From: Hyphochytrium catenoides
Lineage: Eukaryota; Protista; Hyphochytriomycota
Assembly (NCBI GenBank): GCA_900088475.1
Contig: FLMG01002277.1
Location: 1 to 57,582, forward strand
DNA length: 57,582 bases
Direction of reading: 5' to 3'
Shown piece after piece: positions 2,773-12,282 of the stretch; the stretch's first letter is position 1; the number at the start of each line of letters is the position of its first letter. A program made the translations under genes and the position numbers. The notes under the pieces were generated by a model. That model made no database searches. It saw only the letters and a list, made by a program, of their open reading frames with translations, and was not told the origin of the DNA.

Positions 2773-3022
2773 GCTTGCCGTCTTCCTCTGATGACTATGT
2801 CTGATCCTCCCAGCTTATGGCATAAGGCCGATGCCTTGCCCTGCAGTGATCTGCATGAAAGATCGGGTACCGCTGCAGACGACTGAAGATGGACGTTTGA
2901 AGTATTGAGTCCCTCGCGGGGCGGCGACGACCAAGGAAAGGTAAAGCTTGTAGTAGCTTAGTGCTGGTGTCAGATGGCGTTTGGACAAGCTGCTGCTTCG
3001 CATCACAACAAAAGGCCTACAC

Positions 3023-3280
3023 TCTTCTTTCTCTCTCTCTCCGCCCTCTTCTCTCTTTCACTCTCCCCCTCCTTCTCCTCTGTCTCCTTCTCTCTTACCT
3101 TTCTCTCCTTTCTGTCTTGCCTTCTCTCCTTTCTCTTTTCTCTTTCTTTCCCTCTCTTCTTCCCTCTCTTTCTCTCTTTGTCTCCTCTTTTTTGTCTTTC
3201 TCTGATTTCTCTTTTTGTTTTCTCTCTCTCTCTCTCTCTCTCTTCTCTTACCATTCTCTCTTTGCCTCTTTCTCTCTCTC
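3023..3280. repeat. CT-rich polypyrimidine / (CT)n low-complexity tract
   Basis: Almost pure C/T on the + strand. It generates the spurious L/S/F-rich and E/R/K-rich ORFs here. Confidence 0.9.
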
Positions 3281-3818
3281 GAGTGTCTTTCAATTCTCTG
3301 TCCCACGGCTTTTTATATTCGCCTGTCTCTTCCTCTTATCCCTACACCCTCCTCTCGCTACATACTCTACCTTATATACGCTAGGTTTGTCCACTCTGTC
3401 TCTCACCAGAACTGACTCTTCCTCTGGGAGAAAAACGAGGAATGTTTGTCCTCACACAAGATCACAAGATCTTTGGTGTCGATCTGATTCGTGAAAAGAT
3501 CACCTGCTGACAATCATAAATGAGATTATCACTTTAAGATCTGCAAGGCACCTGACCGCTAACGGCACTATGTTAAACAAAAGAAGAAAAACCTAAGGCC
3601 CAAGGATCTCTTCCAATGAAAGATACGCAGATTTATTACCAGCAGGATGTGGAGAGATCGGTATGGAGCTTGCAGGTTCTCAGATGTACGTTCAAAGGCA
3701 CCACGAAACCGCTCGCCTCCTCAACACCCACTGTGACTCTGCTACGTTGCATATTGCAGTTGCTAGCCTCCTCACTATCAACTACGGTGCGCATTGCCAG
3801 CCACATAGCCGCTTAAGT

Positions 3819-6449
3819 ATGAAGCTCGCACTGTCGGTGGGCGTTGTGTGCCTCACAGCATTCAATGCTGTCGGCTTGACCTCGGCGAGGTCTCTTTTTG
3901 GCGGCTCCGCAAATTCTAAGAAGACAGTTGTTTTCTTCAGCGATCAAGCAGAAAAATCAGCCTTCGGCACTTTTCTGGGAGAGCTTGAAAGTAGGTCAAG
4001 TGACTTCAACTTCCCTTGAACTTGGACTGTCCACTAACCAGGTTTTAATGCAGGTCGGGGCCACAAACTGACATTTGCCAGCACCAGAGACTCGGTCAGC
4101 CTGGAGCAGTATGGCGAATGGTCCTTTGACAACCTTGTCTTCTTGGCGTCCGATCTTGATAAGACTGCCCAGACGTTCAAGAAGTTGCCTGCCTTCTTGG
4201 AGGCTGGGGGAAATGTTATGATGGCCTTACCAAAGTAAGTGCACCTTTTGATTGCTACGGGTAAGCCCAACTCACAACCATCGCGACGTGCAGAGTCTCT
4301 TCTTATCCAAAGGCATCAGTCACCTTCTTGGAAAAGATAGGAGTGGATGTGCATCCAGCTGGCAGCCAAGTGGTAGACCATTTTTCTAATTTTGATGGCA
4401 ACTCCACAGTCATCAAGACGACAAACTATTGCAAGGCAAGCTCTGCGTCCTTTATCGATGTCCCTCTCTCTTACTTATTACATTCTCAGTGCCATTGTGA
4501 ACGCATCGTTCCTTCCAAAACGTGATTGTTATTCTGCGTCCTTCCCTTTTGACGCGCCTTCTTTCTTCGCGTGTCACTCCCTTTAGCATTTCTTTGCTCC
4601 TTATTATGGCTATATGAATATGGTGCTAGCTATACACTCTTTCTCCCTCGAATGTTCTCCGCCTTTTCAGGAGGACGGGCCCCAAGATATGTTTCACTCT
4701 TTTTGCACCCTCATTCTAATATTGGCCCTCACCCAACGGCTCTTGTGTAGATTCCTTATGTAGTCGGAGAGCTCTCCCGGACAAGTCCCTCGATTGCCTA
4801 CGATGGAGTCTCTTTTGACGTGCAGAAGGAGAACTATCTAGCTGTGAGTGTTTTGAGAGGAGATTCAACCTCTTACTCAGCGGATGCCAAGAAAAAAGAG
4901 GCGAAACCTTATAGTGCAGGGTCAAAGACCCTCCTCGTAACTGCGATCCAGGTAACGCTTGCCTTTCAGCTCTTCGTGTTGCCAGGATCCTCCCCGGCCA
5001 TTCTTTATTCGTGTCACCCTCTCTATGCACGGATTGAAAGCGATGCGCTTGGCCTCGTTAGAGGACCTCTTTGTCTAATGGAGCCTGTCTCGCGCAGTCA
5101 ATATCGGTCTTCTGACTTCTTTTGCATACCACTATCTTTCTAGGCTCGAAACAACGCGAGACTCGTCCTTACGGGCTCTGCAGCCATGTGCAGTGATGCA
5201 CTCCTTAGTAAGGGAGAAGGAAACAAGGTCAGTGGCGAGAGCCTTCCCTTGTCATGAGCGATTCTGCATGGATATGTCATATACTAGTGCTAATAGCAAA
5301 TTGTAGGCACTCTGCTCTGCGTTGTCAAAGTGGGCCTTCCAAGAGGCAGGTGTTATCCAAGCCTCCAACATTGAGGTAGGACCTAGAGGTTTAAGGAACT
5401 AGCAGATCACTCCGTGTCTCTCTATGTTTAATGGTGTTTGTCTCAAGCCTGGCTCGCCATTTTTGTCTCGATCCTCCTCTCACCCGCTCATGACATTCTT
5501 TCCCTTTTATGTGGTTACAGCATCATCGGGCGGATGGGAGTGCACCAGATCCTATGCTGAAGGCTGTGCAAAGGGAGGATCTCCCTTTCTCACTTTACCC
5601 GGATCCTGAAATTGCCAGGGAATCTCTTACCTACCGTATCAAGGACGAGCTTATCTATGCCTTTAATCTGAGCGAATACAAAGAGTAAGTTAGCAAATTA
5701 GGGGCACATCGCGTTCTTGGAAAGATTCGGTTGAACGCTATGAGTGTGGTGTACCCTTTTCGCTGAGGTTAACCCAAGGATGATGCACCTCATTCAGCCC
5801 ATTCACCTCTCGCTGGCAACCCTTGACTTACTTTAAATTCTCCTTTGCCTTTCATATTCTCTTCTTTGTCATTCAGAGGCAAGTGGGTGCCATACAGAGC
5901 GAACGACGTCCAGCTTGAGTTCGTGATGCTGGATCCATATGTACGAACGACGATGAAACACAATCAAAAAGGGCGATTTGAAGCTAAGTTTACTGGTACG
6001 AAGACGGCCAAAAGAAAGCTTTTCTTCTCCCTTTATTCAGAAGCACCGTTGATCTGGCGCTTATGTCTCTGTCATTTGGACTTTTGCTTGCCGTCTTTTG
6101 CGTCTTTCGCGTCCGAATTGCCTCACAGGATCTGTATAAATATGTCCATTTAGAGGGTCTTTTTAGGATCCTGCCCTTCAATCTCCTGCCCTCGTAGCTT
6201 GTCTTATCGTCCGTACCTCGCCTCTCCCTTTGTCTAGCACCGGATGCGTATGGCATCTACCAGTTCCGCGTAATGTATCGCCGTCCCGGTCTATCTGTGC
6301 TGCACTTCACGACCCAAGTCAGCCTTCGGCCCTTCAAGCACGATGAGTATGAGCGCTTCATCACTGCAGCAACTCCGTATTATACCTCCGTGTTCTCGCT
6401 TATGGCCGGCTTCCTCCTCCTCTCGATGATGTTCCTCTTTGGGAAGTAG
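3819..6449 (+). CDS. WBP1: Oligosaccharyltransferase 48 kDa subunit (OST48/DDOST/Wbp1), ~10 exons
   Basis: Signal peptide MKLALSVGVVCLTAFNAVG. Family motifs LEQYGEWSFDNLVFLA, FLEAGGNVMMA, VVDHF, LLVTAIQ|ARNNARLVLTGS, YRIKDELIY, WVPYRANDVQLEFVMLDPYVR, PDAYGIYQFRVMYRRPG, RPFKHDEYERFITAATPYYTS, then a C-terminal TM helix. TAG at 6447-6449. Confidence 0.95.
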
Positions 6450-6781
6450 AGCAAGACCGACTACGGTGGTGCCAGCCGTATAAACTCAGCTTGCATATAA
6501 TAATCAACACGTAGAGAAAAACAGCATAACGCGTTTGTGCCGATTAAGAGCCACTTAGCTATGGGACGAGAAGAGAGGGTTTAAATAAGGAAGAGAGGTT
6601 TGATGCTTCTGTTGATTTTATTAAATTCCGTGCCTACAGCTTCTACAAGTTGCAGGACGGTCGAAACCGGAACCTAGGACTTTCCATCCCCATAAATAGA
6701 CAAGAAAATTGGGCCATTCTCCCTCTACAGGAGACGCCGAACTAGAGATACCTAAGTAGCACTTCAGAGAAAGTTTGCTAG

Positions 6782-9700
6782 CTAGCTTCTTGGAGTGGGA
6801 GTGATGTCCTTGTCGCAAAGCGGCTGAAAGAGTGCCAAGGTGGTCGTATATCCATGGACAAAGGTTCTTGGGCCACAAGGACCAATTTCTCCGGAGCAAA
6901 AGAGGCCGATGGACGGCCGCTGAAGTTAAAGTTAACATTAGAGGCTAAAGACGGAAGAGAGGCAGGAATACGTGGATTGTCAAAAAGATTGAATGTGCTT
7001 AGACCACTATTCCAGGTGGGGAGGGAAACTTCCAACTCCGGCATAGCTCAGCAAAGTTTGGCATGAGAGAAGTCCGAGCGAGGAAGTTGAAGAAAGGACT
7101 ATTAACAAGAGAAGGGAAGGGCCTGAATGACTGCGTGCAGCAAGGGAGCTTTTGGTCATGTAGCTCCATACCTTCCCGAGAGTCTCTTCAAGAATGCCAC
7201 TTTCGTGGTTGGGCAATCCATAGAAGCTTTTACCNNNNNNNNNNNNNNNNNNNNNNNNNNNNNNNNNNNNNNNNNNNNNNNNNTTCGCTTTGCTTGTGTT
7301 TCTCCAGCAAAGTCCTGAACTCAAGAGAGGACGATAGAGAAGTACGATAGTGGAACTGGATAGTCTGTCCTTCATTTATGTCTCCGCTTGGCATAGCTAT
7401 GACGAGCGCCGAGACCTCTTTCCCTTGCACCCAGTCCTATATGTGAAAAGCCGCAATTACTCTTCCACCAGCCCAGAGAACAATATAGTTCCAGGAGAAG
7501 AGAGAGAAGCTGTATGCTATGAAACAGTATACAAAGTGCTAGCAAAACACATATCGATGGGATAGAAGGGTTGGACGTTGATATGTATAGAAGCAAAGCT
7601 CTACAAAGTCTTTCGGATTGCTCCGTGAATACGATAACTTCACATTTACTAGGAAGAAACTGAGGCTAGAGGCACACCGAAGGACAGATATGTAAGAAGG
7701 TTCACCTTAAGCAAACCACCGTGTCGTATAATATAGTCAGTATTCGATCCCTTTGGTCCTGTGGCTCCTAATTCTCCGGTGCTTGTCGAGCTCGGAAGCC
7801 TAAAGCCAGCTAGAATGACATCGCTAAAATGCGCCCTCTCAGTAGCATCCAGCTCCTGCAGTAACAACCCAGTTGAGGATAAGACGCAGGAAGTGATGTA
7901 CACGCAAGAGAGACATTTCAGCATGAAGCCTATACATCTTGCTGTCTTCTTGTCGGGATCATCCTAGCATTAGTAAGCACTCTGAACTTCCATCCTCCAC
8001 CATGCCGTAACCCCAGATGGCACCATTGTCCAGCCTGCTCTCCCTATTCTGTGTCTCTCCCCATCCTATGTGTACTCATCTTACCTGGAACCATTCCGAG
8101 AGCGCTTCTCTTAGCGGCTTCCCATTCAACCCGTAGACGACATTTCCCCTTGCTGAGGTGATTATAAGGGGGCGACCCATGGGCCTGCATCTGAACAGAT
8201 GAGGAGCAGAGATGAAGACACTTTAACGTCAACGCAAGGGGCTGATGTGGACAAAGGAAGGGACTTAGCTATTGGAGAGAGAGAGATGATTAGGAAAAAT
8301 GACCAGGAACGGAAAGGAAATAGGACGCGAGAGTCGTTTGTTGGAGACGTACGACCAGACGATACATAAGTGCCTGTGAGTCAAAACCCTTTCGGTGGTG
8401 TTGCACTCAATAAAAAAGCGAAGCATGTTTCAAGAAAAGCAAATCTACAGATAGATCGAGGTGAACAGTTAAACTCTAAACAAGCTCGTTTTCTTCTCTC
8501 TCACCCTTGAGAGACCATGGGGTTCATTTTGTATTCCCCAAATAAGACTAGGCCCAAAGCTCCTTCACTTCCTCTTCGCTCCCCATTGAGGTAGAACTCT
8601 GTGGTGTCATTCTGCGGGACCATGCCCCCAATAATGCGGGAGAAAGGAAGCACGTTGTCCAAGTGCTTAAGGAACTCTTCAACAGTGAAGAAGCCCTGCC
8701 AGATTAGTTAGTAGGAGGATTTGCGTCGAGCACACTTATAGAAGTCTCGAAAAATAGAGAACAGAGGAAGAAGGCATCCCTGGAAAAGCGGAAACTTTTA
8801 AGCCATTGTACTTTATAGAGAGAAACACACTATGAAAGCGTAAGGCATTCCTATCAGCCAAAGCAAACACACGGTAGGAATGTGCTGTCTGCATTGTACC
8901 TCTTCATCAGGATTATTAGAGAAGTTGAAGGCTCTCGGCTTCTCGGATGCGAACACTACGGCAGAGGGTGCCTCCGTTTCAGGAAGACTGACTAGAGCTC
9001 TCCATAGGTCAGGCCGATCCTCGATTGCTATGTGCTCTCCTTGTACACTGTCGTCCTCATCTCGTCGGGGCAGTTGAAGTTGAGGGAGAGATGAGGTCTT
9101 TGAGAAAAAGGGAGCTAGGACAACTCCAGGTAAGGATGCACCTAAAATAGCTACGACAGGGTCGTCCGACTCCACCTACGGATGGGGCAAAGGAGAGGGA
9201 TGATAACGATCTATCAGAACCTCACATATGTCCGGGAAAAATCGCCGCTCTCTCTTATTTGTCTGTCCAAAGCTGCAGAGCCTCGGTCTCTAGCATTAGA
9301 AAGGCAATACCTCCACTCCGTCAGCAATGACCCCTCCAGGGGTTGTCACTCCCAGCACAACGCCTGGCCTTAAGCTCTCCTCTAGCTTCTCAGAGAATCG
9401 AGCTGAAAGAACTGAACTTGTTGAAATAAAGATCACCTGCATAATGGAATAAGTAAAGAGCGAAGTGATTTGAGAAGCCTAAGCACTAGAGTTTAACCGC
9501 AGCAGCTAGAGCAGAAGGAGAGTCGACAGAGGCTGCCGCCTGAGGGTGCATGATGAGGAGAGAAGGAGGAAGGTGGGCACAAGCCGACGTGATGAATTTT
9601 CCTTAATGCTGACGGCACGTCAACAGGATTGTGTAAGACCACCCCAATTGAGGTGAAGCGAGCAAGATAACTTCCAATGACCTACCAAATCTAGTCTCCC

Positions 9701-9946
9701 TTTGTCATTGGTCTTCAGCCCTTGGAGCTTCTCTTTCCAGGCGTCTGAGTCTACCTCCTCCTGCCCTCTCAACAGCATTGATGACCAGGTAGCCCTTGCC
9801 CTGGCCCCACTGAAGCGTCGAGATCGGGTCGACCCTGCACGCCCACTTGCTAAAGGACTATCAAAAGAGGGGAGAATAGAGGATGGATAGCCCCTTCGGC
9901 GTGACAGCCGCCTCAAAATAGAGACCCTAGCGACTAGGAGCGCCAT
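6782..9946 (-). CDS. FIST_N + FIST_C domain protein (NosP-like small-ligand sensor family), multi-exon, with an R/S-rich N-terminal presequence and no F-box
   Basis: Spliced translation reads TWSSML..RLDL|VIFIS..GVTTPGGVIADGVE|VESDDPVVAILGASLPGV..LDNVLPFSRIIGG..GALGLVLFG..MVSQG|CRPMGRPLIITSARGNVVYGLNGKP..DYIIR..GQTIQFHYR..GKSFYGLPNHES..GLFCSGEIGPCGPRTFVHGYTTTLALF. QGCRPxG, QFHxR and GEIGP..HGYT are hallmark FIST motifs. Confidence 0.85.
7235..7283. other. Assembly gap (N run) inside the FIST_C coding region
   Basis: Run of n characters, located where the conserved 'F.C.GRG' motif would be expected. Confidence 0.95.
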
Positions 9947-10811
9947 AGTTGATGGACCGAGTTCCTTATGTGCTGTCGAGGCCTTCTCCCTTTCCGGATG
10001 TGAATAGCAGCACCTTTCGTTGTACCTCTTTCTCCGTAATCCCTGCGTTGCTGAGTCTATGTCTCGGCGCGCTCTTCTACTTCTATGACTCTTTCAGGGC
10101 TTCACGCCGCCTCTTGTCTCGAAGAAGATCCACAGCTCCTGCTCTTCAAAGCTCAGAAACTGGAAAATATATTGCTTGCAAGAAGTCTTCTTCCTGTTCT
10201 TATGTCAAAATTCAAAACCTCCTAATCCTTGTCTAAAATGCCAAGCACCAAGTCAATTTCAGTTGGTAATTTACATTTTTGACAGCATAAGAATTTGGAC
10301 CTCCATCACCCTAGTTTACATATTACTCGCTCATTGTGAATTTACCACAACTCGCACCGTCATTTTGGCAGGATGAGAGCTGAAGGTTTTGCGAATCCAA
10401 AGGACGTGACTTCTGGCACGGTCGTGACCTCCTTCGGCGGGCTCTTCATCGTATGGTTCCACTGTGAGGTAGGCCCTCGAGCTAGGGAAGGTGCTGCTGA
10501 TCGGAAGGGCGTTGAGCTGATTGAGGGCTAGCCCAGCAGAGAAGAACCAGAGAAGAAGCAGGCCTCAGGAACGGTCCCACCAGGCGGACCGTGCCGTGGG
10601 AAAGGCTGGTTAGGAAACCCAGGCATGGACTTGTCCTCTCCGAGACTCTGTTTGCACTGCGAACGGAAGTTCGGGACTGACCAAGCGTCTCCGTCGAGAG
10701 TTCCAAGCAGCAGGACTAGAAGAGAAGAAATGGCAATAGAAAGAACGCGTTGATGAACAGTCGTACACTTGGCACTAAGAATACGGATTACCTCGTGAAT
10801 GAATTGCTGCA

Positions 10812-12282
10812 ATGGCGAATTCATCCCCGAAAGAAGAGGACTATGCGGATGACTTTGACGATGAGGAGACAACCAAGGAGAGCAAGCAGAGTGAGGGCGT
10901 ACGAATACCTTCTATTGCTGAAGGCTTGACAGGTAAGCCTTATGTGCTTGCCTTTCTCCACCTCTTAGGCCGCTCTTCAAGTAATGCCTTTCCGTCCATT
11001 CCTTTCTGACACTCACACTGCATCCTTGTTAGCGTTCTTCTGGACTCTTGCCATTTCGACTTCTACCATATGTGCTCTATGGACCTTTTCCTTCCTGACC
11101 CACTGTCAAGATAATCTCTTCATCACGTGTCTCTTCATCACTGTGGACGGAGAGCCTCATTAACGGCCCTATGCCCGTCTCAGTTCCCTTTACCTGCTCT
11201 TGCGTCAGCCCTTGTAGGGGAACGGGTTGAGGTCTATTGGACGGAGTGCGGAGAGTGGTTCCAGGGAGTAGTGACTTCTATCACAACCGATAACAAACTG
11301 CATGTTAGCTATGGTAAGCAACGAAGTGGAATAGATGCTAGCCCAAAGCGAGACCCGCTTGAGATAGAGAGCGAGAGGATCACACATGCTGACAATCATT
11401 GAGAACAAGCATGCGCTCGTCAGATAGAAAGAGGTAGAGATTAAAGAGAAGGTAGACATGACATGTCCAAGAAGAAAATGGCGGAAAGGGGACAAGGAGG
11501 ACCCCTACGCTTGTCTCTGCCCCATCTTTCAATTTTTGCTCCCTTTTGCACTCTACTCTCTCTCCTTCCAGACAGAAGTTCGCCTCTCTCTCACCGACTC
11601 ACATCTTCTAAAAGTCACGGGTACAGTGCCTTATTCTACCCACGCATTCGCAAGTCTTTGGTCTTGTCACTGTGCAATAGCTAACCGCGCAGCATGTCAG
11701 ATGATGGTGATGTTCGGGATGAAGAATTCAACGCTGCCAGCGTTAGGCGCGTAGGGAGTGGGAGTAAGAATGCAACGATTCAAGAAGATCCGAAAGACAT
11801 TACTAGTGAGCAGTCCTCTGCCTCTGCGCCGTGAAGTTTTGTTCCCTTTTTCTTCTCTCTTTTGTGGCACTGAATCCACGTACAAAACTCTGATGTGCCT
11901 GATATGCCTTTAAAAGTATGCGGCCGTTGTTGCGACAGGCTTGACCCTTCTAACTGAGTTGGTTTGACTGGCCTTCGTAGAGAAGTCCCTTCAAGGCTCT
12001 TCTTCGCTTACACCACCAGCACCTCAACTCCCTCAAGCGACGGATCTCACCCAAAGTGAGGAGAAAGAAAGAAAGGTTCACAAGGTTCACTGGACAACAG
12101 TCTTGCAGGCCGTGCATGGCAAGAATGAGGATAAAGTGCTGTCGGCAGTAGAGAAGGTGAGAACCGCTGCCCTGAGCAGCAATGCGACGAAAAGGACCTC
12201 AAACAGTAGCCACCAAGGGAAGTTAAATGGGAAGAATGGGAACGATAGAATTTGGATGGCAACGGCCATGGGACACGGCTAG
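10812..12282 (+). CDS. Small Tudor-like domain protein, ~4 exons; 3' end uncertain
   Basis: Acidic exon 1 (MANSSPKEEDYADDFDDEE..., donor gtaag), then LVGERVEVYWTECGEWFQGVVTSITTDNKLHVSY|DDGDVRDE, which matches the Tudor consensus VGxRVxVxW..WYxGxV..HxVxYDDGD. Confidence 0.7.

Follow-up and report, generated by a model that had tools for sequence, protein, structure and literature searches.

The FIST gene and its predicted protein

The DNA analysed here, which we call the window, is a 57,582-nucleotide (nt) stretch of contig FLMG01002277.1 from Hyphochytrium catenoides, a stramenopile protist. On its minus strand we find a gene for a FIST protein that runs from an ATG at position 9946 to a TAG stop at 6784-6782 and that is predicted from the sequence to have eight exons and seven introns. 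The gene model was obtained by translating the minus strand from 6600 to 10100 in three frames and then anchoring the splice sites. The predicted protein is about 503 amino acids (aa) long if an assembly gap in exon 7 hides 16 codons, with 421 aa that can be read ahead of the gap and 66 aa beyond it, and it consists of a 52-aa Arg/Ser-rich leader followed by a complete FIST_N plus FIST_C body. An earlier note on this DNA had placed a FIST gene with about seven introns at these coordinates and had quoted its N-terminal peptide, and the three-frame reading and the splice sites agree with it on all of these points. The spliced model and the profile alignment described below likewise bear out its claim of a full FIST_N and FIST_C spread across seven spliceosomal introns. 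The features of the gene are as follows.

6782..9946, minus strand: whole FIST coding region, 8 exons, 7 GT-AG introns, about 503 aa
9947..10275, minus strand: 330 nt free of ATG in all three frames, candidate 5' untranslated region or promoter shared with a divergent Agenet-like gene
9686..9946, minus strand: exon 1, aa 1-87, leader and first strand/helix of the FIST fold
9791..9946, minus strand: codons 1-52, extension rich in Arg, Ser, Leu and Ala, candidate mitochondrial presequence, without a counterpart in the bacterial homologues
9311..9436, minus strand: exon 2, aa 88-129, FIST_N profile positions 5-44
8900..9175, minus strand: exon 3, aa 130-221, with an insertion of about 28 aa that is lineage-specific relative to bacteria
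8505..8695, minus strand: exon 4, aa 222-285, phase-2 end, FIST_N profile positions 100-164
8085..8190, minus strand: exon 5, aa 285-320, end of FIST_N (24.0 bits alone) and beginning of FIST_C
7706..7855, minus strand: exon 6, aa 321-370, FIST_C
7172..7436, minus strand: exon 7, aa 371 to about 458, FIST_C, broken by the assembly gap
7235..7283, no strand: assembly gap of 49 N inside exon 7, hiding about 16 codons that include the invariant C-x-G-R
6782..6919, minus strand: exon 8, last 45 aa and the TAG stop, with the motifs G-L-F-C-S-G-E-I-G-P and H-G-Y-T

The introns measure 249, 135, 204, 314, 229, 269 and 252 nt, and all seven begin with GT and end with AG. Homology supports the predicted junctions: that between exons 2 and 3 is crossed by a conserved E-x-E, and the junction between exons 4 and 5 by VSQGCRP, which is found unchanged in a FIST protein of the actinobacterium Nonomuraea. 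Because this motif is identical across the junction, the choice of acceptor site at exon 4/5 is settled. The setting of the gene is certainly eukaryotic, given its spliceosomal introns and the OST48 and Agenet-like genes that flank it. As predicted here, it is an intact nuclear stramenopile gene for a single-module FIST protein.

Membership in the bacterial FIST family

When single exons were searched against Pfam, PF08495 (FIST_N) gave matches to exons 2, 4 and 5 that are colinear with the profile (positions 5-44, 100-164 and 166-189), and the score of exon 5 alone exceeded the gathering score of 23.2. No single exon reached a FIST_C match in this exon-by-exon search of Pfam, but the spliced protein could be aligned through the entire FIST_C part of a profile of 30 bacterial proteins, as well as with residues 237-396 of the Nonomuraea protein. 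The profile check proposed in the earlier note was positive for FIST_N in exon 5, and for FIST_C through the bacterial profile and not through single-exon Pfam. In an Atlas feature search with exon 4, 29 of the 30 nearest clusters were FIST N. A tblastn search of plasmid records with exon 8 returned an unannotated open reading frame (ORF) of Nonomuraea gerenzanensis that carries both PF08495 (122 bits) and PF10442 (FIST_C, 84 bits), and the spliced window protein aligns with this ORF over 372 residues at 26% identity (99.8 bits).

Species-representative bacterial genomes were then scanned with patterns taken from exon 8 and from actinobacterial C-termini, which yielded 534 confirmed relatives. 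The best 80 of these 534, selected on C-terminal similarity, are our bacterial comparison set; they belong to the Actinomycetota (mostly Thermoleophilia), Planctomycetota, Acidobacteriota, Cyanobacteriota, Verrucomicrobiota, Nitrospirota, Chloroflexota, Myxococcota and Omnitrophota. By local blastp, the best pairwise matches to the bacterial ORFs have 27-31% identity over 400-495 aa, with scores of up to 151 bits. The profile, A3, was built from 30 bacterial stand-alone FIST proteins of nine phyla, every one of which has PF08495 and PF10442. It matches the spliced window protein with 207.8 bits (E 2e-60) in a single stretch, aa 85-492, which covers profile positions 36-395 of 398.

Eighteen invariant columns of the A3 alignment can be assessed, and the window protein retains 17 of them (three more, the C-x-G-R invariants, are hidden in the gap); among the columns with 80% conservation or higher, 72 are assessable and 49 agree. 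Because these columns are retained and the profile match reaches 208 bits, the predicted protein looks like an intact, member-like FIST homologue under constraint and not a decayed copy. By the same alignment, it is in one sequence family with the bacterial stand-alone "FIST signal transduction proteins" of about 390-420 aa. With the members of that family from Nonomuraea, Thermoleophilia, Planctomycetota, Acidobacteriota and Cyanobacteriota it has in common an end-to-end two-domain body and the motifs E-x-E, G-G, S-Q-G-x-x-P, G-E-I-G-P and H-G-x-T, and neither the bacterial proteins nor the window protein has any additional domain. It differs from them in being only 27-33% identical, in its very long branch outside the sampled clades, in the seven spliceosomal introns of its gene, and in having the 52-aa basic leader and the FIST_N insertion of about 28 aa.

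The assembly gap falls on the most conserved FIST motif, L-x-F-x-C-x-G-R, and the next Gly of the motif is read just past it. The codons that flank the gap are whole on either side, in the frames set by the neighbouring splice sites, and when 16 X are placed at the gap the protein aligns there without insertions or deletions, both with the Nonomuraea FIST protein and with the 30-sequence bacterial profile. Because of this, the true length of the gap is probably a multiple of three near 48 nt rather than the 49 that is written. An intron within the gap is unlikely, since the shortest intron of the gene is 135 nt. The gap, which the earlier note had named for closing, is thus compatible by frame and alignment with a continuous in-frame segment of about 48 nt.

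Origin and search for kin

A maximum-likelihood tree (IQ-TREE, from a MAFFT alignment) was computed for 76 bacterial proteins together with the window protein. In this tree the bacterial FIST sequences largely follow phyla, and the window protein has a terminal branch of 2.44 substitutions per site that lies outside every sampled bacterial clade, its identity to any of the bacterial proteins being 33% at most. No supported set in this tree contains the window protein, and no donor phylum emerges from it, so that it points neither to an endosymbiotic source nor to a particular donor by horizontal gene transfer, the two routes put forward in the earlier note. As a separate observation, the bacterial stand-alone FIST proteins (loci L002-L081), with a tree that largely tracks phyla and no neighbouring gene shared across phyla within 2.5 kb, look like an "orphan" sensor module with no known partner.

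Closer kin were sought in several other collections. Exon 4, a short query of 63 aa, had no match at E<=0.001 among 1.84 billion representative proteins from public genomes and metagenomes, where nothing reached about 36 bits. Because exon 4 did not return a match to itself, the proteins of this genome are not in that library. A word search with the exon 1 ORF gave 14 candidates, none of them significant. Metagenomes were scanned with six 8-residue patterns taken from exon 4, and the 599 stretches picked up were all unrelated. A word search that started from the Nonomuraea protein brought up nothing but close FIST proteins of actinobacteria. Exon 5 searched against PDB sequences gave a chance match only, which was rejected.

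The N-terminal leader and the start codon

The 52-aa leader contains 12 Arg, no Lys, 10 Ser and a single acidic residue, an Asp, so that its net charge is +11. These counts agree with the earlier note, which had described a leader of about 50 aa rich in R, S and L with one acidic residue. The N-terminal hydrophobic run is interrupted by Arg7 and is followed by R-R-x-x-R-R-R. Motifs of the form R-x-(F/L)-S occur at aa 12-15 and aa 43-46 (R-R-F-S; MPP-type R-2/R-3). Of 167 open stretches in the window that begin with ATG, only 2 are so basic while having so few acidic residues, which places the leader in the top 1.2%. Homology to the bacterial proteins begins at about aa 53-57. If the host has no plastid, a basic leader that lacks a hydrophobic signal peptide points to the mitochondrion, and we consider it plausible that the leader is a mitochondrial presequence.

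The ATG at 9946, from which the leader would be translated, lies in a context with A at -3 and G at +4, and no second ATG occurs in any frame in about 500 nt of the minus strand (9778-10275), 330 nt upstream and 168 nt downstream. About five ATGs would be expected in the 330-nt upstream stretch, and none is seen. This depletion of ATGs around 9946 looks as if upstream AUGs had been selected against in a long 5' leader.

Flanking genes and additional domains

On the downstream side lies an OST48 gene, which converges on the FIST gene and ends at 6449, about 330 bp past the FIST stop. Upstream, a divergent Agenet/Tudor-like gene on the plus strand begins at about 10812. With these two genes so close on either side, an output domain would not fit, and little space is left for a further 5' exon. 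The earlier note had stated that the protein has neither an F-box nor an output domain. Exon 1 and ten minus-strand ORFs of 9947-10911, about 1 kb of upstream sequence, gave no Pfam match to F-box or FYVE, which upholds the first statement, and the end of OST48 at 6449 leaves no space downstream, which upholds the second.

Other features were noted in this part of the window. The gene for OST48/DDOST, the 48-kDa subunit of oligosaccharyltransferase, is a multi-exon gene on the plus strand at about 3663-6449, with PF23358 at 5845-6153 and 6273-6449. The divergent upstream neighbour, at about 10812-11402 on the plus strand, encodes an acidic N-terminus, and one of its exons is weakly Agenet/Tudor-like (21.8 bits, below the cut-off). 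At 587-2772 on the minus strand there are exons of an RNI-type leucine-rich-repeat protein (LRR_6, 32 bits). The plus strand at 2961-3494 is CT-rich and of low complexity, with long Ser/Leu/Phe-rich frames in two frames, and is probably a simple repeat and not a gene.

Comparison with known FIST proteins

The only solved structures matched by the bacterial profile are those of human FBXO22, at 40.9 bits. FBXO22 (PDB 8s7d, 8ua3 and others) has the same FIST fold as the window protein, but it also has an F-box and acts as an SCF substrate receptor, whereas the window protein has no F-box. The motifs F-x-C-x-G-R-G and G-F-F-x-x-G-E-I-G are common to FBXO22 and the bacterial FIST family. We observed that the Cys of F-x-C-x-G-R-G is invariant in 30/30 bacterial sequences from nine phyla and aligns with Cys326 of FBXO22 (PDB 29hg_A/8ua3, residues 322-330). 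Cys326 is the nucleophile that is covalently engaged by the aldehyde-forming NSD2 and XIAP degraders. Judged from the alignment, the cysteine of FBXO22 that is targeted by these drugs is an ancient invariant of the whole family, and its counterpart in the window protein falls inside the gap. The alignment of the invariant Cys with Cys326 fits a conserved site that is accessible to small molecules.

The earlier note had named FBXO22 and the plant F-box-FIST proteins as the familiar eukaryotic FIST proteins. That list is incomplete, since it misses the oomycete type represented by PsFYVE1 of Phytophthora sojae, described as a secreted effector, with a signal peptide, a FYVE domain and a FIST part (bioRxiv 10.1101/2021.12.02.470886). 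PsFYVE1-type FYVE-FIST proteins are like the window protein in being from stramenopiles, in having FIST_N and FIST_C and in lacking an F-box; they differ in their signal peptide and FYVE domain, and the window gene has no FYVE, a comparison made by domain description only. Both of these eukaryotic FIST modules, that of FBXO22 (bioRxiv 10.1101/2024.06.03.596960) and that of PsFYVE1 (bioRxiv 10.1101/2021.12.02.470886), bind proteins through FIST_C. In bacteria, the NosP proteins are stand-alone FIST proteins that bind heme, sense nitric oxide (NO) and regulate a kinase by contact, and their genes share operons with those for a kinase and for a c-di-GMP-related regulator (PMC12570481). We searched the literature for a mitochondrial or stand-alone eukaryotic FIST protein and found no paper on one.

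Proposed role and alternative explanations

Our best explanation, to which we give a probability of roughly 0.55, is that the gene encodes a stand-alone FIST protein that starts at ATG 9946, carries a cleavable presequence and serves as a ligand- or partner-binding module in the mitochondrial matrix. With translation beginning at ATG 9946, a mitochondrial presequence of roughly 52 residues would be cleaved off, and the mature FIST body would reach the matrix. Having no effector domain, the protein may use a conserved surface, made up of E-x-E, G-G, S-Q-G-x-x-P, R, C-x-G-R-G, G-E-I-G-P and H-G-x-T, to bind either a small ligand or another protein as its partner. By analogy with FIST modules elsewhere, such as NosP with its kinase and the protein-binding FIST parts of FBXO22 and PsFYVE1, the signal would then be passed on by protein-protein contact. 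We put the chance that the window protein is mitochondrial at about one half. Taking the analogy as a guide, it is most likely a mitochondrial, or failing that a cytosolic, ligand- or partner-binding regulator that acts by protein contacts.

Several points weigh against a matrix-located module of this kind. Within the FIST body, Thr402 replaces the invariant Asp that follows a conserved Arg (R-D) in the bacterial family, S-E replaces the near-invariant D-P, and the C-x-G-R motif of the window protein is unread inside the gap. The proposed mechanism rests on analogy, and we know of no member of the bacterial stand-alone FIST family with a known function. The other points concern the leader. Of the 167 open stretches that begin with ATG, 12 have moderately presequence-like features, and the search of the representatives with exon 4, the metagenome patterns and the exon 1 word search turned up no orthologue whose leader could be compared. 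The next in-frame ATG, Met57 at 9778, aligns with the N-termini of the bacterial homologues (residue 4 of L080, for example, corresponds to residue 57 of the window protein) and could be the true start, giving a cytosolic protein. Scoring by codon usage and by GC content at third codon positions (GC3) does not separate the leader from non-coding DNA and gives no support for coding of codons 1-52, and R, S and L are by nature frequent in random translation; R/S/L-rich translations of non-coding DNA are common. The alignment of Met57, the codon statistics and the commonness of R/S/L-rich translations are also what speaks for the same stand-alone FIST protein working in the cytosol, either from a Met57 start or with a basic leader that does not target, as a ligand- or partner-binding module like the FIST body of FBXO22 minus its F-box. 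We take this possibility seriously while regarding it as somewhat unlikely, because ATG 9946 is the only ATG in its surroundings, follows 330 ATG-free nt and has a strong context, whereas Met57 has a poor one, with T at -3 and C at +4; in addition, ahead of Met57 the reading frame stays open over 106 codons, and few open stretches in the window rival the leader in its charge and its paucity of acidic residues.

Two further explanations would give the FIST body a different function from that proposed in the matrix-located reading. The window protein could be a protein-recognition module akin to FBXO22 or to the oomycete FYVE-FIST proteins, with an N-terminal partner domain that was missed or has been lost. 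The FIST domains of both bind proteins (bioRxiv 10.1101/2024.06.03.596960; 10.1101/2021.12.02.470886), and C-x-G-R-G and G-F-F-x-x-G-E-I-G are common to FBXO22 and the bacterial-type FIST family. We nevertheless think it quite improbable, since neither an F-box nor a FYVE domain was matched in exon 1 or in the minus-strand ORFs of 9947-10911, the divergent neighbour from about 10812 leaves little space for one, and exon 4 had no match at E<=0.001 in the 1.84 billion representatives, which are assumed to include oomycete proteins. On the same bacterial profile, moreover, FBXO22 scores 41 bits and the window protein 208 bits, a difference that also sustains the earlier note's description of the protein as bacterial-type. 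The earlier note had favoured a NosP-like heme and NO sensor located in an organelle. NosP, a heme-binding and NO-sensing protein, is a stand-alone FIST without an output domain (PMC12570481), and the window protein is likewise stand-alone. On NCBIfam NF041558, the equivalog model for NosP, however, the bacterial relatives nearest to the window protein reach 14.5-17.7 bits against a cut-off of 450 bits, and a search of this model with the window exons gave no match. Among the 76 bacterial loci, no neighbouring gene within 2.5 kb is shared by three or more phyla, synteny being found only within the Actinomycetota, and no histidine-kinase or c-di-GMP gene is conserved beside the relatives. The neighbours of the window gene itself, OST48 and the Agenet-like gene, are unrelated eukaryotic genes, and Pseudomonadota, the phylum of the studied NosPs, is missing among the best 80 of the 534 bacterial loci, which were picked on C-terminal similarity. 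A NosP-type heme/NO function is not indicated for the predicted protein; this part of the earlier note found no support, and we consider an organellar NosP-like sensor very improbable indeed.

Significance

As an annotation, the predicted gene is well supported: it is real and correctly modelled, by the scores of its exons and bacterial relatives it is not NosP, and it adds a eukaryotic member to a known domain family whose function is unclear. To our knowledge, few sensor-type domains of still unclear function are as widespread as FIST. Work on it in eukaryotes has been confined almost wholly to FBXO22, now a target of drug discovery, where it forms the substrate-binding part. A bolder view, which we hold as speculative and think unlikely, is that this could be the first FIST protein working in an organelle: a bacterial-type, one-module ligand sensor in the mitochondrial matrix, anciently retained or acquired, that would report a metabolite to mitochondrial partners through the conserved pocket with the Cys that corresponds to Cys326 of FBXO22. 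The ancient retention or acquisition in this view is suggested because the branch of the protein is very long and exon 4 has no close kin in the 1.84 billion representatives. A eukaryotic FIST protein with a full bacterial body, an invariant core, no F-box and maybe a mitochondrial location would open a second eukaryotic setting, independent of the first, for asking what the conserved FIST pocket binds.

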